Positions 4,110 to 63,639 of a stretch of DNA of 64,000 nt are shown one piece after another (position 1 is the stretch's first letter; every line of letters begins with the position of its first letter). The translations under genes were made by a program, and so were the position numbers. The notes under the pieces were generated by a model. The model ran no database searches, was not told where the DNA came from, and saw only the letters and a list, made by a program, of their open reading frames with translations. The stretch spans positions 676,161-740,160 of the forward strand of contig NW_003314340.1 of NCBI RefSeq assembly GCF_000143415.4. The letters are read 5' to 3'. This DNA is from Selaginella moellendorffii. Lineage: Eukaryota > Plantae > Lycopodiophyta.

Positions 4110-7100
4110 GAGCTGTCTGTTTGGACTCCCCGAATAAAAATCACTTTTCTTCTTTATCAAGCTCCTCACCACCTTTCATCAAAGCCACCACCAATTCCCG
4201 CAACTTCCGCATCCCATGTCTCCTTTCTTTCATCGGACAATCAGGACTCAAGGCTCTGGCATTACTGGACTCGGGTGCAACTTCCTGCTTCATGGACACG
4301 GACTTTGCTGCCCGACATCACGTTCCTCTTTCTCCTACCATACGGGATTTGAGGGTTGAAGGCATCGGCGGGCATTTTGTGTCTCCATCTTCTGGACTTA
4401 GGGAAACGTTGCCAGTTCAAGTACACATCGGGTCCACCGTCACCGATATCGCCTTCAACATCATCAACAGCAAGTCCTCCTCTGTGGTGCTCGGTCTTCC
4501 TTGGTTCCAACTACATCAGCCTTAGATCTGTTGGAAGGAATTACAGCTCATCTCTCCCACGGCTTCCCCTGCTGTTCATCGAGTCCGAATCAGGAAAAGT
4601 TCCCTAAACTCAAATCGGGGTTCTGTTCATGACTCTATAAAGTTTTCACCCTCTTCTTTTTCCTCTCTTCCATCTTACACTGGACCGTATCCTCGTCTCA
4701 TCATTCCATTTAGTCGTACACCTCCTCCTATCTCCACAATCACTATGAAAGAACTCCTTCATGAAGAACCTCTTTTTCTTTTTGCTTTGCATGTTTCTCC
4801 TGTCAGTCTTCCTGAGAAGTATCATGATTTTGGGGATGTGTTTGACAAGAAAAAAGCTAGTGTACTGCCTGTTGATCGGCCTTATGATTGTCCCATTGAT
4901 TTACAGGAAGGAGCGTCACCTCCATGGGGGCCTATCTACGGGTTATCCCCGTCTGAGCTTAAGGCCCTCAAAGAGTACATGGATGAGAACCTTGCCTCGG
5001 GCTACATTCAGCATTCGCAGTCCCCGGCTGGAGCACCTGTCTTCTTTGTCAAGAAGAAGGATGGGAGCTTGCGGCTAGTCATCGACTACTGAGGTTTGAA
5101 CAAGGTGACTGTTCGGAACCGTTATCCGCTGCCCCTGATCTCGGATCTGTTGGAACGCCTCGGCGGTGCCCGCTTCTTCACCAAGATCGACCTCCGTGGA
5201 GCATACAACCTGATCCGGATCCGGCCTGGTGATGAATGGAAGACTGCGTTTCGAACCCGCTATGGCCACTTCGAGTACACTGTCATGCCATTTGGCTTGA
5301 CAAATACTCCAGCAGTTTTCCAACACATGGCGAACGACATCTTTCGGGAGTTTCTTGATCAGATGGTGATCGTCTACCTCGATGACATCCTCATCTACTC
5401 AAAAACTCAGGAGGAGCATGACGGACATGTACGCAAGGTGCTAGCGAAGTTGCGAGAACACGGCCTATACGCGAAGCTTGAGAAATGTTCCTTTGATCAG
5501 CAGTCTGTGGAGTTCCTTGGGTACATTATCACTCCTGAGGGTATCACGATGGATCCTGCCAAAGTCAAGACTATTCTCGAATGGGAGCCTCCACAATTAA
5601 TGTCGGACGTTCAGGTTTTCCTTGGCTTCACCAACTTCTACCGCAAATTCATTGATCACTACTCTGACATTGTCCTTCCTCTCACACATCTCACTCGCAA
5701 GGATGTTCCCTTCTCTTGGTCTGCTGCTGCCCAGCAGGCCTTCGACACACTCAAGGCGGCCTTTAGTTCTGCTCCTGTCTTGATCCATGCTGATTCCTCA
5801 CAACCTTTCTTCATCGAGGCTGACGCCTCCAACTTTGCCATTGGTGCTGTGCTGTCTCAACTCAGAGCGGATCACGAACTTCATCCGGTCGCTTTCCATT
5901 CTCGGAAATTTCAGCCTACAGAGATCAATTACGAAATCCACGACAAGGAGCTCCTTGCCATCGTGGATTCCTTCGGAGAGTGGCGCCGTTTCTTGGAGGG
6001 GGCGAGCCATCAAACAACAGTCTAGACGGATCACAAAAATCTCGAGTACTTTGCCACTTCCCGAGTTTTAAGCCGTCGTCAAGCAAGGTGGGCACAATTC
6101 CTGAGTCGGTTTGACTTTGTTATCAAGTACAGACCTGGAAAGTTTCAAGGTCTTCCTGATGCTCTTTCAAGGCGCTCCTATCTCAGTCTCAAGCCTGGTA
6201 ATCCTGCCTTCGATCAACAAGATCAAGTTATCCTCGGTCCTGATCGGCTTCAAGTTATGGCAATTTCCCTGGCCCCTCAGGACTCCTCCTTGATGGATGC
6301 AATCAGAAACGATCTTCAATCCGATGATCTCGCTAGCGACATTTTCCCCCATCTTCAGGTTGGACACCCAGTGACTCCCGACTGCCGGCGATTTGACGAG
6401 TTCGAGTTCTTAGATAGCTTATTGTACCGTGGGGAGCAACTTTACGTTCCTGAAGGTGATGCTCGAAGGTTGGTCCTGATGGCGTGCCACGATAGCCCGA
6501 CTGCTGGTCACTTCGGCATTGCGAAAACCTATGAGCTAGTTGCACGGGACTTTTGGTGGCCTCACATGGACAACTACGTCAAAGCTTTTGTTACCTCCTA
6601 TGACACTTGTGCCCGGAATAAGGTACCTCGCCACCTTCCTTCAGGTTTACTTCGTTCCCTTCCGGTCCCTTCAGGTCCTTGGGAATCCATCTTCATGGAT
6701 TTCTTGAGTGATCTTCCGAGTTCTGGAGGCTTCAACAGCATTTTAGTCGTGGTGGATCGCTTCACAAAGATGGCGCACTTCTTGCCATGTACCAAGGAGT
6801 TTTCGGGCGAGGACATGGCAAAACTGGTATTCAGGGAAATTTTCCGACTTCATGGGATTCCTACAGATGTGGTTTCGGATCGGGGGCCTCAGTTCATCTC
6901 TCATTTCTGGCAACGGTTTTTGCAGCTGCTTGGAGTGAAGGCCAACCTCTCTTCGGCATATCATCCTCAAACTGATGGGCAGTCCGAGCGAATGATTCAG
7001 ACGTTGGAACAATTCTTGAGGTGCTTCATCAACTATCATCAGGATAACTGGTTCGATATCCTTCCCCTTACTGAGTTCTCCTATAACAACTCTGTTCACT

Positions 7101-7840
7101 CCTCTCTTCGAGTTTCCCCCTTCTTTGCAAACTCTGGCCGAAATCCCCGATTCAATCTCTCACTTCCTTCTCCATCTGAATCCTCTCGTTCAAATCCCCG
7201 CTCTGAGGCATTTATCTCCAACCTCCAGGAAATCCACAACTCCATCTCCTTCCACCTCCACCGTGCTCAAGAATCTCATAAAACATTTGCCAATGTCCAT
7301 CATCAGGATTGTCCCCCTTACAATATCGGGGATAAAGTCTGGCTCCTCAGGCGAAATATCTCCACCACCAGGCCCTGTCCAAAACTCGATTTCAAACGCC
7401 TTGGTCCTTTCCCTATCACTGCCATCATTAATCCTGTCACTTATAGCCTTGCACTTCCCTCCTCATATCAAATTCACCCCGTTTTTCACTCCTCTCTCCT
7501 TGAGCCTTATATTCCCAGTCCTATTCCAAATCGGGTCATTCCTCCGCCTCCACCAGTGCAGCTCGAGGATGGGTCTGAGTACGAGGTTCAGGACATCCTT
7601 GATTCCAAGATTTCACGGTCTAAACTCTACTATCTGGTGGACTGGAAGGGTTACGGACCTGAGGAACGCACTTGGGAACCTGCGGACAACCTGATTCATT
7701 CTCCTGACCTTGTTCAGGACTTCCACCGCCGCTATCCTTCTCATCCCAGTCCTCATTCTTTTTCTCCATCTCCCATCCCTCGCCGCTCATCTCATCCTCC
7801 TCTTCGTTCTCGTTCACATCCTCGTTCCACTCGTTCTTGA
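4085..7840 (+). pseudogene. pol: pol (protease, RT, RNase H, integrase, chromodomain) in the -1 frame to gag, with stops at 4523, 5090 and 6023
   Basis: LLDSGAT (PR), VYLDDIL (RT), EADASNFAIG (RH), H-x6-H...C integrase Zn motif, GPF motif, and EYEVQDILD...YYLVDWKGYG...TWEP (chromodomain). All ORF pieces share one frame. Confidence 0.95.
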
Positions 7841-47133: not shown

Positions 47134-48610
47134 ATGGCGGACGAGGAGAGCTCTAGCGCATGGCTCCACTCGGCGCTGATGCGCGTTTGCTCCGATCAAG
47201 CGGCGTTGGGCCTCCAGCTCGATTCCGACACCGTCGCCAGTCTGGTTTGCTACTGCGAGCTCGCCACGCCCGCCGACGCCGCGGAATACATCGTTGTAAG
47301 TTCCTTTCCTTTGTGAATTCCCTGTTTCCCATCTCCAGGGAAGAAATGCGGCATTGCCTTCTCATTGATTTTGCTGGCAGAACATTGTCGGACACGAATC
47401 GTGCGTGGAAATCGTCGAGGAGTATTTAAAACGGAGGACCACACCGCCAACCACGATCAAATCCAGCACCGGTACGCCATTGCAAGCATATCAAAAGCCT
47501 CAGGAAGAATCGACGTGGTCGGCCGGAGGGAAGAATGCCTCTCGAGCTGGAAAGCAAAAAGTCGCTAGCGGTCGCGAGGCAAATCCTGCTGCTGCCGCTG
47601 CTGCTCCAACTTCTTCCACAAAGGCTGCATCGTCTAGAAGAGAAAAAGCTTCCTCTGGAAGAGCAAAAAAGGGAGTGACAGTGGCGGAGGCAAGCAAGAT
47701 GATCCTCAATCCCGGAAAGCCTTGCGACTGCCAAGCAACGCGGCACGAGCTCGTGAATAATTGTTTGTCGTGTGGGAAGATCGTCTGCCAGCAAGAGGGT
47801 GAAGGCCCATGCAGCTTTTGCGGTGCTCTCGTGCTGAAAGAAGGCAGTGCCTATGCTGGTCTGGAGGGAAGTCTGTTGCCAACTTCGGAGGCCGAGGCTG
47901 CCGCGCAAGCGTTCAAGGACAGATTGGTGGAGTACGATCGAAACTCGGCTTCTCGCACGACTGTCATTGACGACCAGAGCGACTTTTTTGAGATCGAGGG
48001 TGATTCTTGGGTGTCAGAGGAGGTAAGTGCTCTTGCTCTCTTGACAAAAAACTTACGTGTTTTATGGAGCAGGAAAAGCAACTACTGAGGAAAAAGCAAA
48101 AGGAGTTTGAGATGGCAGAGGAGGAACGCAAAAAGCGAGTTGTTGTGACAATTGATCTCTTGGGCCGCAAGGTTTGTATTGTATTGGGAATAGCGACACG
48201 GATTGTAACGACTTTTACTTCTGTTTTTTCTTCTTTCACAGGTTGCCATGGCTGGTGGACCAGAAGAAGCAACAGTGGTTGGAAGCAGCAATTCAGGGAG
48301 TTTGGCAACAGCGCATGACCGGGAGAAAACTTTCCGCGTGAAAGCAAGTCCTGACGTTCGAGAGCTTCCGGTCTATGTCAACACCGAATCGTCCAGAGAT
48401 AGAGTAAACAAGAGCAAGGCAGCCTCCACAAGCACGGCGGCAGTGACCGGTCGAGTGCAGTACCAGGACGAATTTACGGAAGCATTACTGGGTCGCAAGA
48501 TGGAGCTTCTAGAGATTGATACAGCACAACAGCATAAGTGGCAGCAACCAAGGCTAATGAAAGGATCGTCAGCATTTGAGGAGGCGTCTCAGAGCTTCGA
48601 GTGTGCATAG
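47134..48610 (+). CDS. ASC-1/TRIP4 (Rqt4)-like C2HC5 zinc-finger protein, multi-exon
   Basis: CDCQATRHELVNNCLSCGKIVCQQEGEGPCSFCG, RLVEYDRNSASRTTVIDDQSDFF and VTIDLLGRKV. Confidence 0.93.
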
Positions 48611-48990
48611 AATTTCACGGGCTGGATAGCTGGCTGGCTGGTCACGAAATGGATACAAGGACGAGAACTGGTTGGTCACGCATTAGTGGGAGTTTGGATC
48701 AACCAATCCTTGCTGGACGTGTGGGACTAGAACAGCGACTTGCTTTCTTACAGGAGGAGTTTTCCGGAGTGTAGTGGTTGCCGCTTTTCGTACTCTAATC
48801 ACTCCTTTTACGTCGTGAGCTGGTCTTTTACATTGATGTGAGCTTTCGTTTTTTCCAGGAGCTTCCTTTCGTTCTTTGGTGCGGAGCAAAGATCTCGGCG
48901 GAAGCGTAAGCAAGTTCTCTTCTCTCCATGATTCGTATACATTCAATGTGGGATTTTTTTTGGCCAGGTGAAGCGCTCCAGCCGCTGAGA

Positions 48991-50214
48991 ATGGTTTCGC
49001 TCTTCGTCATTGCGGCTTCGCTGCTCTGGAGTCACTGGTACATCGACTTTGCACAGGGATGCATTGCTGCCGAGAAGGATGCCTTGCTCAAAGTCAAGGC
49101 GCAGATCACGGAGGACCCAACAATGTGTCTGGTTTCATGGAGGGCTTCTTCGGCGGACTGTTGCAAGTGGTCCAGGGTAACTTGTGACCCCGACACCGGT
49201 CACGTTGTCGAGCTCTACCTCCGGAATTGCTTCTTCAGGGGGACCATCTCCAGCTCCGTTGGGAAGCTCACAAAGCTCAAGTCACTCAACGTATACTTCA
49301 GCAAGCTCAACGGGAGCTTGCCAGCAGAGATTGGGAGCCTCGAGCGGCTGGAAGTTTTGGAGCTCCAGATTAATCAGCTGGACGGGGAGATACCATCTTC
49401 GATAGGACGTCTTTCGAGGCTGAGAGTGCTGGATCTCTCCGACAACCGCTTCACCGGCAGCCTCCCGGCATCCATTGGCAACTTGAAAGCTTTGGAACAC
49501 TTTCGAGTTTACGGGAACTCTCTCAAGGGGACTCTCCCCGAGTCCCTGGGTGGACTTACCGCGCTGGAGACGTTCGAGGCTTACGACAACCAGTTCAGAG
49601 GTGGCATTCCGAGCTCTATAGGGAATCTCACCAAGCTCCGAATCCTCAACCTCTACAGCAACCAGCTCAATGGAATTCTGCCGTCGACTATCGGTGCCTT
49701 GACGTCCCTCGAGATGCTCGTCCTCCACAGCAACAGGCTCAGGGGTGCCATTCCGGAATCGCTCAAGAACTTGGTGGAGCTGGAAACTCTGGCACTCTTT
49801 GGAAACCGGCTCAGGGACTCCATTCCAGACGTGTTCGGCTCCTTGAAAAAACTCCAGTTCGCAACCTTGTCCGACAACCGGTTTAGAGGAGACATCCCGA
49901 CGTCGCTGGCTAGCCTGGACAAGCTGGTTTCTCTCGACGTCTCGCGGAACGCAATGTCCGGCCAGATCCCGGAAGCGCTGGCTGGCAGCTCGGGCTTGTC
50001 CAACTTGGACTTCTCGGACAACCAGCTATCCGGAGTGATTCCTATGAAGATCATGGCACTGCCGGAGCTCAGATACTTCAACGTCTCCAACAATCGTCTG
50101 CATGGCCAGATCCCGCAGGTTGGAAGGTTCTCGGCTTCGGCGTTTATGGGAAACCCCGGGCTTTGCGACGCACCTCTTCCACCTTGCACTGCATCAAGCG
50201 AAGAAAGCACCTAG
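48991..50214 (+). CDS. Secreted LRR-only protein (PGIP/DRT100/RLP-like; no TM helix or kinase), single exon
   Basis: Signal peptide MVSLFVIAASLLW..., LRRNT cap (C...ALL...SW...CC.W..V.C), about 13 plant-specific LxxLxxLxLxxNxLxGxIP repeats, C-cap GNPGLC, then a stop. The ORF is open from 48928. Confidence 0.92.
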   Translation: MVSLFVIAASLLWSHWYIDFAQGCIAAEKDALLKVKAQITEDPTMCLVSWRASSADCCKWSRVTCDPDTGHVVELYLRNCFFRGTISSSVGKLTKLKSLNVYFSKLNGSLPAEIGSLERLEVLELQINQLDGEIPSSIGRLSRLRVLDLSDNRFTGSLPASIGNLKALEHFRVYGNSLKGTLPESLGGLTALETFEAYDNQFRGGIPSSIGNLTKLRILNLYSNQLNGILPSTIGALTSLEMLVLHSNRLRGAIPESLKNLVELETLALFGNRLRDSIPDVFGSLKKLQFATLSDNRFRGDIPTSLASLDKLVSLDVSRNAMSGQIPEALAGSSGLSNLDFSDNQLSGVIPMKIMALPELRYFNVSNNRLHGQIPQVGRFSASAFMGNPGLCDAPLPPCTASSEEST

Positions 50215-50358
50215 TTTTACGTCTAAAATTCACTTTGCCAGGTACTAATCTATACATCTTGAAAAGAAAACTTTTGTTCTTTCTCCCAGGTGTGTCGGGA
50301 GGTATTGTTTACTTGCTTCGTGCTCACGTCGATTCCATTGTGCTTTGCGTGACCAGCA

Positions 50359-50577
50359 TTAGGATCCAACTGGAGCATTTGCCGAGACGTCGGGCTTTTC
50401 GTAGCTGAAAACGACTTGATTGCCACGGGGACTGGGACTGGAGGGAGGAACTTGGATGTTCTTGGGCAGCCGGTTAAACGTGACGAGGTTCTCGTGATCC
50501 ATCGTCCCGGCCTGGTCCCTGGCAAAGATCGGCATCACCATCAAGCACCAGAGCAACATCAAAACCCGAGGTACCAT
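50359..50577 (-). CDS. Small secreted peptide precursor, IDA/PIP-like (72 aa)
   Basis: Hydrophobic N-terminus MVPRVLMLLWCLMVMPIFA; motif FNRLPKNIQVPPSSPSPRGN followed by a short C-terminal tail. Confidence 0.75.
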   Translation of the reverse strand: MVPRVLMLLWCLMVMPIFARDQAGTMDHENLVTFNRLPKNIQVPPSSPSPRGNQVVFSYEKPDVSANAPVGS

Positions 50578-51338
50578 CCTGAGAAGAACTCTGACGCTCT
50601 TTTCTCTGGAGAGGGATGTTTTGTTTTTCTAGCAGCCGAGGTGGTCGAAGGCAATGTGTTTGCCGCAATGGTTGAAATTACGCGGTGGTGGTGAGTTTGT
50701 CAATTCTAGTTTGTTAAAATTCTTCTCTGGCACTGTTGCTACGACCCGGCTTGGTTGGTGCTTTGTGCTCAATACTTTTCAGAGTCTTTGCGAGACAGGA
50801 CAATGTGTTACACGCGTTGGCTCAGATCTACAAAGTTGTCAAATAGTTTTTTCTCTCGATCCTTTGCATTCTTTCTTCCAACTTTGAGAGTCTTCTTCCA
50901 AAGAAGTACCAAACCTTCTACTTCCAAAAACTCGTCTTCTTCGCTCGAGTAATAATAAGCTTTGTTTTCATACTGTTTTGGTGTTCGTAGCTGGAGTCAT
51001 GGTTTCTGGCTGTTGATCCGGGACTTTTAGCAATATCAGCGCGTAGTTTTTGACATTGTGATTGTCTTTGCTTTCTTTCCAAGGTTTGAAAGCGTTGGGA
51101 TTGTACGTGATTTGTTGACTATTTGAATAAGTCATGCTCAAGATTCAGGTGTGGATGAGATAAGAGCAACAAACAAAAGTCCAGTTTTAATTGTTTAAGA
51201 ATTCGATGACACGACTATGTACAGAAAGAATAGATCCAACCAAGTCTAAACACAAAAATAAAACTCTCCTTTGGTGTGTGTACGTGTTCTTCCCTCAGCA
51301 AAAATGCAAGACTTTGGAGACTCTTGTCAAAGTATCTC

Positions 51339-51596
51339 TCAATTTCCTCCAGGATTTGGCCCCGAAGGAGGAGGATCATCGAAGAACTTGCTTCTCCCGT
51401 TCCATCCCGCATGGAGCTCCCGCAGCGCTCTCGTGCATCGATCCAGCGCCCCCGATGCCGCCACGCGAATCGCTTCCAGGCTGTGATGATGCCGGTGGCG
51501 ATCGTGGAGATTCCTGGCCGAAGAACACACACAACTGGAAGAAACCAAGAGAAGAGCCAGCAACAAAGCCACTCCAACACGACCCGGTGGAGCCAT
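51339..51596 (-). CDS. Small secreted peptide precursor, CLE/IDA-like (85 aa)
   Basis: Signal MAPPGRVGVALLLALLLVSSSCVCSSA-R; C-terminal DPPPSGPNPGGN-stop; TATAAAA on the minus strand at 51687-51693. Confidence 0.75.
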   Translation of the reverse strand: MAPPGRVGVALLLALLLVSSSCVCSSARNLHDRHRHHHSLEAIRVAASGALDRCTRALRELHAGWNGRSKFFDDPPPSGPNPGGN

Positions 51597-52664
51597 GAAA
51601 ACCACTCTCGATCGTGTCTAGATGATCTCCTCTTGACTCTCTCTCGCGCTTTTCCTCTCGATCGATCAATCGATGGACGACTTTGGTTTTATACCACGCC
51701 CCAGGGATTTGCGAGAGAAGATCAAGCAAAGCAAAGAAAGCGCAAAGAAAGCGCTTACCACTCTACTGCGATGATAAGAATTTCCCCTTGGAAGACGAAA
51801 GAGTGCTAACTTGGCTACCACGCCACCACCAATTAAAGATGTTGTTCATAAAACACGGTTTTGACCCTAGGCCAGCCAGCGCATACCATTCGTCACCCTA
51901 CTTTCACCCAGAGATAAGTTTTCTTGCTCTATCAAGCAACAACCAGCAATTTTACCACGAAACTCTTGCACCAAACTCTCTAGTTTAGAGTTTTACCCGG
52001 AGAAAACTTCCACCCAAGAACAGCAAGGTCTCGAGTTTAGAAATTTCAACGGGTTGAAAAGGAAAAAAGGATGCGAGGAAGTGCCACTTTTTGGTGTCCC
52101 AGATCGTGGGCTTCCCGCAAAATCATAGCCGGCATTTCGCGTAGCCGACCCATTTGACACAGTAAATTTTCTTAGTTAAGCGGTGAAGAGCTCCGCACGC
52201 CACCTTAAGCGGGTAAAGATTCGTCGTCAAAAATAGCCCGGAGTTTTTCAACGCTTGAACTTGAAATTGTGCACGTTCAAAAGCACGAATATGGGAAAAC
52301 CAGAAAAAAAAACGTTGAATGGTCAAGAGTCAGCTACTTTAGAACCAGAAAAACAGGGCCAGTCAACCATTGTCATGCCGTAGGCGCGTTCACGAGTCGT
52401 TTCCATGGCAGTTCCTGGGTGAAAAAACCAAAATATAAAGCTGGGGCACGCTCTCGAGTGGATCAATCACGGGTTCTTCCAAGCATACGAATCGATATCA
52501 CTCGAATTTTTCCACTCGGGCGATCATTAGAGTCTTCAAGGAGGAAGGAGCAGAAGATTACGATCTCAACGATTCCTTCTTCCTCATAGGAATACATATC
52601 ACCGGTTTTGAAGATTTTGACAACGCGATTCGGATCCGGAGAGATCGTTCTAGGCTCTTTGGGA

Positions 52665-52904
52665 ATGGCGAGATTTACTCAAGCGCTGGCTGCTTTCCTT
52701 GTGATGATGGTGATGTTCTCTCCGGGTCTTTGCGAGTGCCATGGTGGAGTGAGTGGATCTTTGTTCGGGATTGGAATGAATAACAGTGAAGTGGCGATCA
52801 ATTCGACGGGTAACAGGAAGATGTTGCTGGAAGGCCAAGTTTTCCAAAAGCTTCCCAAGAATACTCCAACAGCACCATCGGGTCCAAACAAGGGTCACAA
52901 CTGA
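52665..52904 (+). CDS. Small secreted peptide precursor, IDA-like (79 aa)
   Basis: Signal MARFTQALAAFLVMMVMFSPGLCEC; RKML processing-type site; C-terminal FQKLPKNTPTAPSGPNKGHN-stop; TATAAA at 52434. Confidence 0.82.
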   Translation: MARFTQALAAFLVMMVMFSPGLCECHGGVSGSLFGIGMNNSEVAINSTGNRKMLLEGQVFQKLPKNTPTAPSGPNKGHN

Positions 52905-54536
52905 GAGAAGGTTATCAAACTTGGAGCTGTTGCTGAGGAGTAAAAAGATGAAACTCAGACATTTTTGTAAATAGATTCATTTATAAATGTTTTCGATTTG
53001 AGGTCTATCTTTTAGTTCATCATAGTTGTCTCCAAACCGATCGACTTGAAGCTCAAAACATATAATTTCTAAATATAACAGCAAATTCTAGAATATTCTA
53101 ATCTATTTATTTACACATATGTGGACATATTTTTTGTTTTCTGAAGCATGCCACATAAGCAGGCCACCTAGGATTGCCCTTACAGTGACCTGGGTTTATA
53201 AACTATAAATGTGCTTATAATTTTTGACAGTTTTTAAGATGATTTCTATAATTAATGTTCCAACATTTTAAAATAAGAAAGAGTAGAATTAGAATACGAC
53301 AACAAAGTTATCTGATTATTCAGAAAGATGTAATTATGTAATTATTCAGAAAGTTTATTGTGGAATATAATATAAAGGCATTAATTAAATGCAATTTAAA
53401 ATTTCACCAAACTTTATTCTGATAGATGATTTTGAAGAAAAATGTAGTTTATTCATCCAGTTTCATATTAACTTTTTGTTTAGAATTTTTTTTTGAGAAT
53501 TCTTAATTGAATTACACATTAATAAACTAAATTGATAATAATACTAAGAATAACATTATTATTAAACAAATATGTAAGGCACAGTAATTTCTGGTTTGCT
53601 TCAGAAATAGAATTTCTTGGTCTGTTTGGTAGTAGTGAATATACCGAAAATATATTTGAATATTTTAAAATATTCTACCATCTAATAGTTGTTATTCATT
53701 TAGATTAATCTTATATTTATAATTTATAAACATGTTTATAATTTATAAGCTTTTCTAAACACTTCCTACTATTAATATTTAATTATACTTTTCTCAATAT
53801 ATTGTTATATCTATTAAAATAATTACTTATTCTTGAACAATAAATATAATAAATGTAATAAATGTCTAAAACTCTAAAAAAACTACAGCTTCTCGACTAA
53901 GGGTCACAAATAAGAGAACATAAGAGCTATAAAAAAATCAAAATGTACATAAATTTATTCATACTTTCAAATAGCTCGAACTTTCATCATTACTATAAAC
54001 CATTTGTAACTGCTTGAAACCAATGATTTTTTCTCCTCTCTCGCGTCCCATTAACTTCTTCCTTCACGGGCCTGCCTACCTCAAAGCTTGGCCTCTCCTT
54101 TTTTTGTGTCGTGCGAGTACTCCGTGACCACCCCCCACCTCTAGCAACATATTCACAGAAAAGTGAAGCTCCCTTCTAATCCCAATCCCAACATCAAAAC
54201 AATCACTCGAGATGTAACGGAAAAATATACGACAATAGCGAACCTGTCCAATCCTCCACACACTAGGTAGATCATAGGCGTCCTCATTTCTCCATGCTGA
54301 ATAAATTGCCCAGAGATAATGCCAGGCTAACTGTTGTGAAAGCTCCACTTGGCTTCATCTTGGTGACAAGAATTCAATCCGCTAAGATTCCAGGCCTTGC
54401 TGCTCGCTGCTCTTTCAGCAGCCATTTCCTTGTCCGCACTGTCAGGTAAGGTGTAAGTGATCTAGACAGGGGAGAAAACAACCAAGGAAGAAATCACACC
54501 TACATTCATCGATGCACGGAAGAAGCTCGAGTAGAA

Positions 54537-57600: not shown

Positions 57601-58845
57601 TCAAAACCGCGGATAGATCGGAACCACGGCCTCTGGCAGTGCCCGATCCGGCGCCGCGATGATGCACGGCTCCTCGCTATACGCCTGGCGCAAGAATTTC
57701 AGGAGCTCATACACCTGCTGCTTAGTCGCGGCGCTGCAATCTACGTGAAGCAGCAGCAGCAATCGCTCAAACGTATTCGCATCCACCGCCCTCTTGCGCA
57801 TCAATCCCTCGCTGCTGGAGAACTTACACAAGCTCCAGATGATCGAGACTGCGAGCTCGGTGGCGAGGGTCGAGACCCGGAACATCTTCTTGGCCACCGC
57901 GAACATCCCCAGCTCGTGGCCCGCGAAGGAATCCCTCCCCTCGGCGCTCCGGCACAGGAGCTCGAGCACAGACAGTCCGAGTTCCGTACATGACCGGCTG
58001 CCCAGCTCGGGTAAGAGCTCAATGACCCGGTGTACGGCACCCAGCGCGACGAGCCGGGCCCTGTTCCTCCGGAGCTCCAGGAGCGATCGCATCGCCTCGA
58101 GCCCCGCGCGGGGCATCGAATTCCTCCTCCCCTTGCCCGTGGTGGATGATTCGCTCGCGAGCATCCCGACGAGCGCGACGAGAAGGGGCTGACTGGAGCC
58201 CAGTTGGAGCTTGAGATCGCAGTCGGCGCTGGCGAGTTTCTCGACGATCGAAGCGGCGTTTATCCGGGCCTCCGTGCTGGAGCTGCGAGACAAGAGAATT
58301 GCGGTGGATGATCGCGCCAGCCGTGTCAGTGTGTCGTGATCGTCGGCGTTCTTGGAGGAGGTGGTGGGCATCAAGAACAAGATAGTGCCCAGTGCCTCCT
58401 CGACAATCTCGCTGCTACTGGATGGCGATTCCAGCACCGCCATGACCGCTGCCATCAAATCCTCTCGCAATTGAGGGCTCATCTTCTGCTGCTGCTTGAT
58501 CAAGCTCTTCCTCACGCTCCGGAGCTCCTGCGCTAGTCCAATTGACGAGCTACACAGTCTCTGGATCGTCACTGCTCCTAGAATTTCACAGCCTTGCTCC
58601 TCTTGCCGGCCATCCTTGGTCAGCGAGCTGCAAAACGAGTGGATCAAGCTCCGGAGTGTGAGATTGGGCACAAGCTCCGTGCTGGGCATACTCTGCATTG
58701 TCGCCGGGCACGTCGAATTCCCATCGGCGATCCACTTCTCGATGCTCTTGCGCTCGTATGTGATCCCCGTGCACAGCGTCACGGGGTCTCGCATGAGCTC
58801 CAGCGAGATTGGGCACCTAAACAGGGGGGGAATGGTGGTCGCCAT
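57601..58845 (-). CDS. Plant U-box/ARM E3 ubiquitin ligase (CMPG1/PUB20-29 class), single exon
   Basis: IPPLFRCPISLELMRDPVTLCTGITYERKSIEKW...CPATMQ...LVPNLTLRSLI, followed by ARM repeats. Confidence 0.95.
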   Translation of the reverse strand: MATTIPPLFRCPISLELMRDPVTLCTGITYERKSIEKWIADGNSTCPATMQSMPSTELVPNLTLRSLIHSFCSSLTKDGRQEEQGCEILGAVTIQRLCSSSIGLAQELRSVRKSLIKQQQKMSPQLREDLMAAVMAVLESPSSSSEIVEEALGTILFLMPTTSSKNADDHDTLTRLARSSTAILLSRSSSTEARINAASIVEKLASADCDLKLQLGSSQPLLVALVGMLASESSTTGKGRRNSMPRAGLEAMRSLLELRRNRARLVALGAVHRVIELLPELGSRSCTELGLSVLELLCRSAEGRDSFAGHELGMFAVAKKMFRVSTLATELAVSIIWSLCKFSSSEGLMRKRAVDANTFERLLLLLHVDCSAATKQQVYELLKFLRQAYSEEPCIIAAPDRALPEAVVPIYPRF

Positions 58846-62121: not shown

Positions 62122-63639
62122 TCACGCGGCAGCTGTGAGGAGGCAAGTGTTGTCTTCCTTGTTCCTGTTCTTGCCGCTATCACCGCCAGCGCCATCGTTG
62201 TTGCTGCCACTCCCATCGATGCATTCCCTGTAAGCCCTGTGAAGAAGCTTGAGCAGATCCCCGGCCTTGTGCTTGGTCCTTGGATTACACCCAATCTGGA
62301 GGAAGAAGAAGAGCTTGGGGAACAAACCCACCTCCACCATCCTCCTCTTGACGATCTCATCCGGGCAATACTTGCAAACCGCCCACAGCACATCGATCGC
62401 GTACTCGGTCGCCATATCCGACACCTTGAACAGCTTCCGCGCCACCGCCGGCACCGCCAGCGCGTGCCGCGCCACCGCCGCCCGCCCCTCGGCGCAGCCA
62501 CACAGGCATTCCAGCGCCGCCAGGATCGCCTCGGTGGTCACCTTGTCCGCCTCCACGAGAAGCTCCGCCAGCGGCGCCACCACGCCCGTCTCCACCAGCC
62601 GGACCCTGTTCTTGAGCGGCGGGCACACCGCCAGCACCGCGCGGAGGCTCCCCCGGATCGCTGGGCGGTGGCGCCGCTGGGAGTGATCCTCGCCCACCAG
62701 GCGCACCAATCCCTCGAAGATCCCCGCGGTGGCGCCGACCGCGCCGCGCGCCTCCTTGTCCGCGCAGCACAGCTCCTCGATCAGCGCCGCCGCCGAGACC
62801 CGCGTGTGGAGATCGCCCCTCTGGAGGAGCCGGGCGATGGCGGCGAGATTGCGCGGGGAGAGTAGCTCCTTGCGAGAGGGCTCGTCGAGATTCGCGATGA
62901 GCGGCGGGAGGAGGGAGAGGATCTGGGCTTGCGAGTCTTCCTCGTCTTGCTCTTGGCCTTGATCCTCCGAGAAGGACGATACCAGCACTGGCGCTAGCCC
63001 CGCCCGGATCAAGAGCGTCTTGCTCCTCTCCTCCTGGCTCCTCGCGATCAATCGCTTCACCGCCACGGGGCGCGAGCGGGGGATTCGCAGCTGGGCGACG
63101 AGCACTTGCGCCTCGCGGAGATCCATGGGCTGCTCGCGATCGCCCCGTGCGCCACTCTGGAATCGATTCGCGGCGCACCAGCCGTGGATGATCCTCTGGA
63201 GCGTGTGATTGGGGATGAGCTCGTGGGAGTGGAGCTCCTGCATCGTCACGGGGCACGTCCGGCGGCCCTCCTGGAACCACTTCTCGATGCTGGAGCGATC
63301 GTAAGTGATACCCGTGCACACGCTCACGGGATCGGCCATGAGGCACAGGGAGATCGGGCACTTGAAGTGCGATGGAACCTCGGGGTGATGCTTGCGCAGC
63401 GTTTCCTCCTGCTCGTCGAGACCCATTTCGCGGACGGTGATTTGGGGGCGACCCACTTCCCGATCATCAAGAACGAGCACCGCCCAGGCCCGCAATCGAT
63501 CCAAATCCCCCCTTTTGCCGAGCGTGGCGATGGTCGATGGCCCCAAATCCAAACCCGAGTCGCAAACGCTCGGAGATCTTTGCCTGCATTTAACGATCCT
63601 GGGCTGGGCTTCTTGCCAGGAATCCCCAAGATCACACAC
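62122..63639 (-). CDS. Second plant U-box/ARM E3 ligase (same class), single exon; likely ATG at 63426
   Basis: VPSHFKCPISLCLMADPVSVCTGITYDRSSIEKW...CPVTMQ...LIPNHTLQRII, followed by ARM repeats. It is a paralogue of 57601-58845. Confidence 0.95.
   Translation of the reverse strand: MCDLGDSWQEAQPRIVKCRQRSPSVCDSGLDLGPSTIATLGKRGDLDRLRAWAVLVLDDREVGRPQITVREMGLDEQEETLRKHHPEVPSHFKCPISLCLMADPVSVCTGITYDRSSIEKWFQEGRRTCPVTMQELHSHELIPNHTLQRIIHGWCAANRFQSGARGDREQPMDLREAQVLVAQLRIPRSRPVAVKRLIARSQEERSKTLLIRAGLAPVLVSSFSEDQGQEQDEEDSQAQILSLLPPLIANLDEPSRKELLSPRNLAAIARLLQRGDLHTRVSAAALIEELCCADKEARGAVGATAGIFEGLVRLVGEDHSQRRHRPAIRGSLRAVLAVCPPLKNRVRLVETGVVAPLAELLVEADKVTTEAILAALECLCGCAEGRAAVARHALAVPAVARKLFKVSDMATEYAIDVLWAVCKYCPDEIVKRRMVEVGLFPKLFFFLQIGCNPRTKHKAGDLLKLLHRAYRECIDGSGSNNDGAGGDSGKNRNKEDNTCLLTAAA

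Follow-up and report, generated by a model that had tools for sequence, protein, structure and literature searches.

The locus and its gene content

In a stretch of 64,000 nucleotides of the genome of the lycophyte Selaginella moellendorffii (RefSeq assembly GCF_000143415.4, contig NW_003314340.1, positions 676,161 to 740,160 of the forward strand; hereafter the window, the numbering of which is used throughout), three small intronless open reading frames (ORFs) for putative secreted, proline-rich signalling peptides lie next to a gene for a protein built of leucine-rich repeats (LRR). ORF1 (50359..50577, minus strand) encodes 72 amino acids and contains FNRLPKNIQVPPSSPSPRGN; ORF2 (51339..51596, minus strand) encodes 85 amino acids and has the C-terminus DPPPSGPNPGGN (51342–51377); and ORF3 (52665..52904, plus strand) encodes 79 amino acids and ends in FQKLPKNTPTAPSGPNKGHN. 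The coding sequence of the LRR-only protein (407 amino acids; 48991..50214, plus strand), which has Pfam matches and is a GenBank gene, is convergent with ORF1, the two stop codons being exactly 144 bp apart. This arrangement, and likewise the three ORFs with their signal peptides and proline-rich 12-mers, were found in the sequence just as an original prediction for this stretch had described them.

The region is available as two haplotypes: GenBank scaffold GL377644.1 matches the window at 100% identity, and scaffold GL377595.1, with 96.3% identity, is the second haplotype (haplotype 2). In the GenBank gene tables of both, the 407-residue LRR protein is followed by a gene for a 723-residue product, nothing is annotated between the two, and ORF1, ORF2 and ORF3 are absent. 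Nor do the products of the three ORFs, in either allelic version, have an exact match in a collection of 15 billion proteins, so that the expectation that genes of this size escape annotation held for all of them. A repeat search detected no duplication among the three peptide genes at the DNA level, an Rfam scan over 48–54 kb returned no match and a scan of the locus for bacterial-type promoters and terminators was uninformative in a plant.

IDA-like motifs in ORF1 and ORF3

Each of the three ORFs opens with a basic N-terminus followed by a hydrophobic stretch of 12–15 residues (Kyte–Doolittle 12-residue maxima of 2.5–3.2). In ORF1 and ORF3 (maxima of 2.47 and 2.73, respectively) small residues precede a plausible cleavage site, completing a predicted signal peptide, and in ORF1 this site is followed by an Arg. 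IDA and the related IDL precursors have been defined by a secretion signal and an EPIP domain, the latter being sufficient for IDA function, with an S(G/A/V)PS core, a [RK][RK]HN ending and a tail of up to 13 amino acids (Vie et al., 2015; PMC4526919). EPIP-like 20-mers are located at 50419–50478 in ORF1, where the segment ends in RGN and 19 further residues follow, and at 52842–52901 in ORF3, where it ends the protein with HN. The 12-mer of ORF1 is thus not C-terminal, a detail absent from the original prediction, which had correctly attributed the F..LPK extension of the EPIP domain to two of the ORFs.

To place these segments against their background, all stop-free 20-mers of the six-frame translation of the window (~62,000) were scored against the AtIDA EPIP and GmIDA1a peptides. 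With the AtIDA EPIP 20-mer, ORF1 and ORF3 scored 63 and 59, each with 11 of 20 identical residues and with the EPIP-type combination of F..LPK and a Pro-rich 12-mer, versus 31 for the next best segment and a mean of −21 (standard deviation, 9.4). The GmIDA1a peptide gave 67 for ORF1, 66 for ORF3 and 30 for the next best, the runner-up in both comparisons being an ordinary Pro-rich stretch. When ORF1 and ORF3 were compared with each other without their signal peptides, the alignment score of 47 was reached by none of 2000 shuffles. Because these scores and shuffles lie far beyond chance expectation, the IDA-like motifs of ORF1 and ORF3 are real.

Two broader searches point in the same direction. 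In Atlas, a feature search based on a protein language model, ORF1 was associated with IDL5 (PF27884) clusters (score of 0.94, 202 shared features) and ORF3 with an IDL5 cluster (0.90, 176 shared features), which for the Pfam family itself amounts to a lead. A profile built from ORF1 and both alleles of ORF3, compared exhaustively with 1.84 billion proteins, yielded nine matches at E ≤ 0.001, six of which are precursors from angiosperms in which the module F..LPK..P.PPSGPS is repeated; these matches support membership in the motif family, short of proving orthology. The angiosperm multi-module precursors (P0130–P0136) have this module in common with ORF1 and ORF3: one module of the Acer protein P0131 is identical to ORF3 at 13 of 20 positions, and one of the Fagus protein P0134, a module ending in RGN, is identical to ORF1 at 13 of 20. 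They differ in carrying three to five modules in tandem and in having no terminal HN. These proteins, from Cinchona, Acer, Tripterygium, Fagus and Salix, have been given no name beyond ‘hypothetical’ or ‘proline-rich proteoglycan 2-like’, and to judge from their modules look like multi-copy precursors of IDA/PIP-type peptides.

Compared with the IDA/IDL family as a whole (Arabidopsis IDA and IDL1-8, and the putative MpIDA1-2 and SmIDA1-3), ORF1 and ORF3 are alike in being small intronless precursors (72–79 amino acids) with a signal peptide, a variable pro-region, an F..LPKN module, a PS.P core and a final Asn in the motif, and ORF1 further shares the C-terminal tail and the Arg after the signal peptide. 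The C-terminal His-Asn has been stressed for MpIDA and SmIDA. ORF3 retains it behind a single basic residue and without a tail, the core and ending being SGPN and KGHN in the window and SGPS and KDHN in haplotype 2, the allele of which has the C-terminus PTAPSGPSKDHN. By its motifs, ORF3 appears to fit the IDA/IDL description well, the haplotype 2 allele (SGPS-KDHN) above all. ORF1 ends its motif in PRGN, with the terminal Asn but not the His; RGN with further residues behind it is likewise found in MiIDL1, a nematode protein described as a functional mimic of IDA, and in a multi-module precursor of Fagus. The GxGH of PIP/PIPL peptides was found at the extreme C-terminus of none of the three ORFs. 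Both ORF1 and ORF3 thus look like IDA/IDL-type prepropeptides.

ORF2, between CLE and IDA

The 12-mer of ORF2, DPPPSGPNPGGN, forms the very end of a protein that starts with a signal peptide, which is the layout of CLE precursors. It combines the PSGPNP core and final Asn of the H-type CLE peptide TDIF (HEVPSGPNPISN) with the GN ending of MpCLE1 (HKNPAGPNPIGN), and is identical to each of them at 7 of 12 positions and to MpIDA1 at 6 of 12. The CLE core P4-x-G6-P7-[ND]8-P9 is present together with the Asn/His of position 12, whereas position 1 is Asp in place of the CLE Arg/His, and position 11 is Gly in place of His, yet Gly occupies this position in MpCLE1 and 16D10 as well. Atlas associated ORF2 with a CLE_plant (PF27922) cluster (0.90, 184 shared features), IDL5 appearing first at rank 32.

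A divergent H-type CLE gene (TDIF/CLE46/MpCLE1-like), unrelated by descent to its neighbours, would account for the core, the two 7-of-12 matches, the GN ending and the Atlas ranking, as well as for the fact that ORF2 is devoid of an LPK module; the cluster would then be silent on the ancestry of CLE and IDA. However, apart from the Asp at position 1 and the missing His at position 11, the alignment score with MpCLE1 (38) barely exceeds that of an unrelated match in the window (34), and the gene sits between two IDA-like genes with which it has several traits in common: a PPS.P..GN tail shared with ORF1 (the score being reached by 2 of 2000 shuffles), an Arg that directly follows the signal peptide and, ahead of the motif, a Phe at an aligned position. 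We therefore regard a plain CLE identity as possible but doubtful, and ORF2 seems best described, from its motifs, as a CLE/IDA intermediate.

The nine residues with which ORF2 ends, PSGPNPGGN (51342–51368), are shared without a difference by the mature CLE-like effector 16D10 of root-knot nematodes (Meloidogyne; GKKPSGPNPGGN). Possibly, 16D10 mimics a host ligand of just this kind, a plant-encoded peptide with the ending seen in ORF2.

Conservation between haplotypes

In haplotype 2, none of the three ORFs is interrupted. No insertions or deletions separate the haplotypes in the 717 bp of the small ORFs, compared with 13 events in 2067 bp of non-coding DNA (P ~0.011). ORF1 is free of substitutions over its 219 bp, against rates of 6% in the adjoining intron of the LRR gene, 2.1% in the rest of the 3′ untranslated region (UTR) exon of that gene (8 in 378 bp) and ~2.3% in non-coding DNA; at the non-coding rate ~5 substitutions would be expected (P ~0.006), and at the rate of the LRR coding sequence, 0.9%, the absence of changes has P ~0.14. 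ORF2 differs by one synonymous change and one change in the signal peptide (G5R). A 177-residue ORF on the plus strand, antisense to ORF2, was considered as a coding frame and rejected, being interrupted in haplotype 2 by a stop codon and frameshifts; because this competing frame is broken, ORF2 is the conserved frame. The LRR coding sequence has 11 substitutions and no insertions or deletions relative to haplotype 2.

These data bear on the most sceptical view of the locus, namely, that non-coding transcripts happen to contain these open frames by chance, with motifs that are compositional accidents of Pro-rich sequence. The ORFs are indeed short, have no Pfam match or annotated homologue and are missing from protein collections. 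Nevertheless, the motif scores lie ~9 standard deviations above the window mean, when Pro-rich stretches elsewhere reach only 31, each motif ends a frame that opens with a signal-peptide-like segment, and the frames have remained free of insertions and deletions while the antisense competitor of ORF2 has not. Such an accident is exceedingly improbable.

Transcription of the locus

RNA contigs from four runs of four studies were mapped to the locus, and the presence of GT..AG joints in these contigs indicates that they derive from RNA. The transcript of ORF3 spans 52496..52998 on the plus strand, with contigs starting at 52496 in one run and at 52574 in another (run X1); the latter contig, 52574–52998, ends in fifteen non-templated A's (loose end AAAAAAAAAAAAAAA), and the genome from 52999 onward is not A-rich. 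A TATAAAG is located upstream of the transcript at 52434–52440 and an ATAAAT ~10–15 nt before the poly(A) site. The RNA of ORF3 is a polyadenylated mRNA of the plus strand. ORF2 is covered by overlapping contigs over 51191–51843 in three to four runs, the breaks between which fall at heterozygous sites. Absence of transcription, which the original prediction had considered fatal to the peptide calls, was thus seen for neither ORF2 nor ORF3, whereas a sense transcript of ORF1 was not detected in the four runs.

The LRR gene is spliced in both untranslated regions. Its 5′UTR intron (48906..48967, plus strand) has GT..AG borders and the joint 48905^48968 in contigs of four runs, three of which carry the joint in its other allelic version, visible as 13 intervening letters. 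Because the ATG at 48928 falls within this intron, it was rejected as the start of the LRR protein, and the start codon is that at 48991. The 3′UTR intron (50242..50356, plus strand), which also has GT..AG borders, starts 27 nt past the stop codon, its joint is present in contigs of all four runs, and its splice sites are kept in haplotype 2 despite 6% substitutions within the intron; a reading of the same intron on the minus strand was discarded because, with the 4-nt ambiguity of the joint allowed for, that strand offers no canonical splice sites. The terminal 3′UTR exon (50357..50970, plus strand) is documented by contigs 50353–50955/50970 that are joined to the coding sequence, with AATAATAA at 50951–50958, just upstream of the contig ends. 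The whole of ORF1 is antisense to this exon; that ORF1 lies within a transcribed LRR exon, on the opposite strand, is a further detail not contained in the original prediction.

At the other end of the LRR gene, RNA contigs over 48400–48905 run unbroken from the 3′ end of an upstream TRIP4/zf-C2HC5-like gene (stop codon at 48610) into the LRR 5′UTR exon, reflecting either overlapping UTRs or read-through transcription.

Putative secreted peptides: proposed function and its weak points

Taken together, we interpret the locus, with a probability of roughly two in three, as three unannotated genes that lack introns and encode small secreted, Pro-rich and Asn-terminated prepropeptides, ORF1 and ORF3 of the IDA/IDL type and ORF2 a CLE/IDA intermediate, the products of which would be read by LRR receptor kinases of subfamily XI. 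Receptors of this subfamily use paired arginines (RxR) on their concave face to anchor the C-terminal Asn of the peptide, and S. moellendorffii has been reported to possess an orthologue of HSL2. If Arabidopsis IDA is taken as the model, the precursors would enter the secretory pathway and be released by a subtilase cutting after the conserved LPK, as reportedly happens after the Lys of this motif in IDA, to give 12–14-mers, of which the 14-mers would begin with Asn. The central prolines would be hydroxylated, the expected hydroxyprolinated species being NIQVPPSSPSPRGN, NTPTAPSGPNKGHN and those of the DPPPSGPNPGGN type, and the mature peptides would bind HSL-type receptors via the C-terminal Asn. 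The ORF1 product would additionally need its 19-residue tail trimmed.

Several observations count against this interpretation. In the exhaustive profile search, single-module IDA proteins remained below significance, a level out of their reach against so many proteins, and for this reason the family assignment rests on the 20-residue motif. No match to ORF1-3 was found in the local Pfam library, a copy that apparently contains neither the IDL5 nor the CLE_plant model; ORF2 and ORF3, when used as queries in word-based searches for homologues, gave no matches, and orthologues in other species were not recovered. ORF1 departs from the IDA/IDL description in several respects: Gly replaces the conserved His, giving RGN rather than [RK][RK]HN, the core is SSPS rather than S(G/A/V)PS, and the tail of 19 residues compares with the up to 13 of the family description. 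ORF3 carries 8 substitutions between the haplotypes, which amount to four amino-acid and three synonymous changes with no insertions or deletions, and two of the amino-acid changes (N to S and G to D) fall within the 12-mer itself; constraint on ORF3 is weak, that is, weak purifying selection at best. The contigs over ORF2 carry no indication of strand. As to ORF1, the segment expected to be its 3′UTR (50242–50352) is without coverage in all four runs from the four studies, and the RNA over the ORF is accounted for by the plus-strand LRR mRNA. Because of these last two facts, expression of ORF1 in its own right is putative.

A narrower reading would retain only ORF2 and ORF3 as functional genes, ORF1 being unexpressed, either a silent IDA-like relic or a frame kept as part of the LRR 3′UTR. 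Wherever ORF1 is covered, the RNA continues into the plus-strand, GT..AG-spliced LRR transcript, coverage is absent from the 115 bp that follow the ORF1 stop codon, no TATA-like element is seen upstream on the minus strand and the His of the motif has given way to Gly. Yet the frame is intact, begins with a signal peptide and holds both the best IDA match in the window and the strongest Atlas score of the three, and its identity in the two haplotypes contrasts with the 8 substitutions in the remaining 378 bp of the exon. Moreover, contigs drop rare transcripts, peptide genes are often on in few cells or conditions, and activity has been reported for a peptide ending in RGN, that of the nematode mimic. 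Silence of ORF1 is accordingly a possibility of some substance, albeit an unlikely one beside the interpretation that includes all three genes.

A more ambitious proposal is that the trio are tandem paralogues that keep, within 2.6 kb, the transition from an IDA motif (F..LPK, PS.PS..HN) to a CLE motif (PSGPNP..N), and that the spliced LRR 3′UTR, as a natural antisense transcript, couples or gates the expression of ORF1. We consider this conjunction distinctly improbable. The suggestion, made at the outset, that the three precursors form an old local family stays plausible, its evidence being a short shared motif.

The LRR-only protein

The LRR protein comprises a signal peptide, twelve to thirteen 24-residue plant LRRs and a C-terminal Cys pair, with Pfam matches to LRRNT_2 (2.7e-10) and LRR_1/LRR_8. 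No kinase domain and no transmembrane helix were found in it, the Kyte–Doolittle 19-residue maximum outside the signal peptide being 1.25; Pfam and hydropathy thus agree with its prediction as a secreted protein. In these respects, as in its LRRNT_2 cap and its missing anchor, it resembles secreted LRR-only proteins of the PGIP-like/DRT100-like kind, from which its gene is set apart by the unusual spliced 3′UTR antisense to a peptide ORF. Its comparison with PGIP and with receptor ectodomains revealed no specific orthology, and neither an island domain nor an RxR was seen in it.

Since peptides of this class are bound by LRR ectodomains, the adjacency had suggested that the soluble protein is a linked binder, decoy or co-receptor, in which case the four genes would be a co-inherited signalling unit. 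The best alignments of the protein are with the ectodomains of peptide receptors such as GSO1, MIK2, PEPR1, HSL1, TDR and HAESA; its mRNA physically overlaps ORF1, and the gene arrangement is the same in both haplotypes. However, scores are high with every plant LRR ectodomain, FLS2 included, at ~30–40% identity, and no specific orthologue emerged from these comparisons, so that the similarity is the generic likeness of repeats and the protein, to judge from its sequence, a generic plant extracellular LRR protein. Its ~13 repeats fall short of the 21 or more that the known receptors have, and two haplotypes of one species are no test of synteny. The RxR anchor for a C-terminal Asn is lacking as well: Arg does not occupy the concave register positions 9 and 11 together in any of the repeats, and the only R.R (in SRLRV) falls at positions 6 and 8, in a register that we take to be that of HAESA in the HAESA-IDA structure (5IXQ), which makes this result indicative only. 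Adjacency itself is unremarkable in a region with one gene per 2–3 kb and unrelated neighbours (TRIP4-like and U-box). A role as binder, decoy or co-receptor is therefore unsupported, and a dedicated peptide-binding unit is very unlikely; the sole real link between the LRR gene and the peptides is the antisense overlap, which could equally be incidental.

Other features of the window

Immediately downstream of the ORF3 transcript, 52999–53123 is the most divergent DNA between the haplotypes (12.8% substitutions plus insertions and deletions), and the next kilobase is AT-rich. Within the divergent segment, a 40-nt piece (53017–53056) recurs inside RNA contigs of 2.6–2.7 kb that come from three of the four runs and otherwise do not resemble this locus; the piece could be a short element shared between sites or else the micro-exon of a gene located elsewhere. 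Further away, long ORFs with reverse-transcriptase-like and integrase-like products at 5096–7840 probably represent a fragment of a Ty3/gypsy-type retrotransposon, and an intronless ORF of 276 amino acids at 38122–38952 has no exact match in the protein collection. Two intronless genes for U-box/ARM E3 ligases similar to PUB25/26 (57601–58845 and 62122–63426, minus strand) are annotated in both GenBank and RefSeq, although with different start codons (414/462/485 and 434/582 amino acids, respectively). The U-box proteins of the window are identical to S. moellendorffii database entries.

Concluding remarks

IDA/IDL genes have been reported to be absent from lycophytes, including Selaginella (Vie et al., 2015; PMC4526919), and three putative S. 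moellendorffii orthologues, SmIDA1-3, were subsequently derived from tBLASTn searches (Furumizu et al., 2021). The published SmIDA sequences are given in figures only, and ORF3, and possibly ORF1, may already be among them. In the searchable text of papers, the 12-mers of the ORFs were found in none on plants, the only match being the coincidental one to 16D10.

With coordinates and evidence of transcription, the gene models help to place the IDA-HSL module as far back as the early vascular plants, and the loci supply testable ligands for the SmHSL receptors, in a class of genes that public annotation overlooks entirely. The antisense overlap of the LRR mRNA with ORF1 adds a small regulatory curiosity. 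A gene intermediate between CLE and IDA and located between IDA-like genes bears on a possible shared ancestry of the two families, to the extent that a short shared motif can; if the three genes were indeed tandem paralogues, the cluster would attest directly, at the level of the genome, to the common origin that has been proposed for CLE and IDA.

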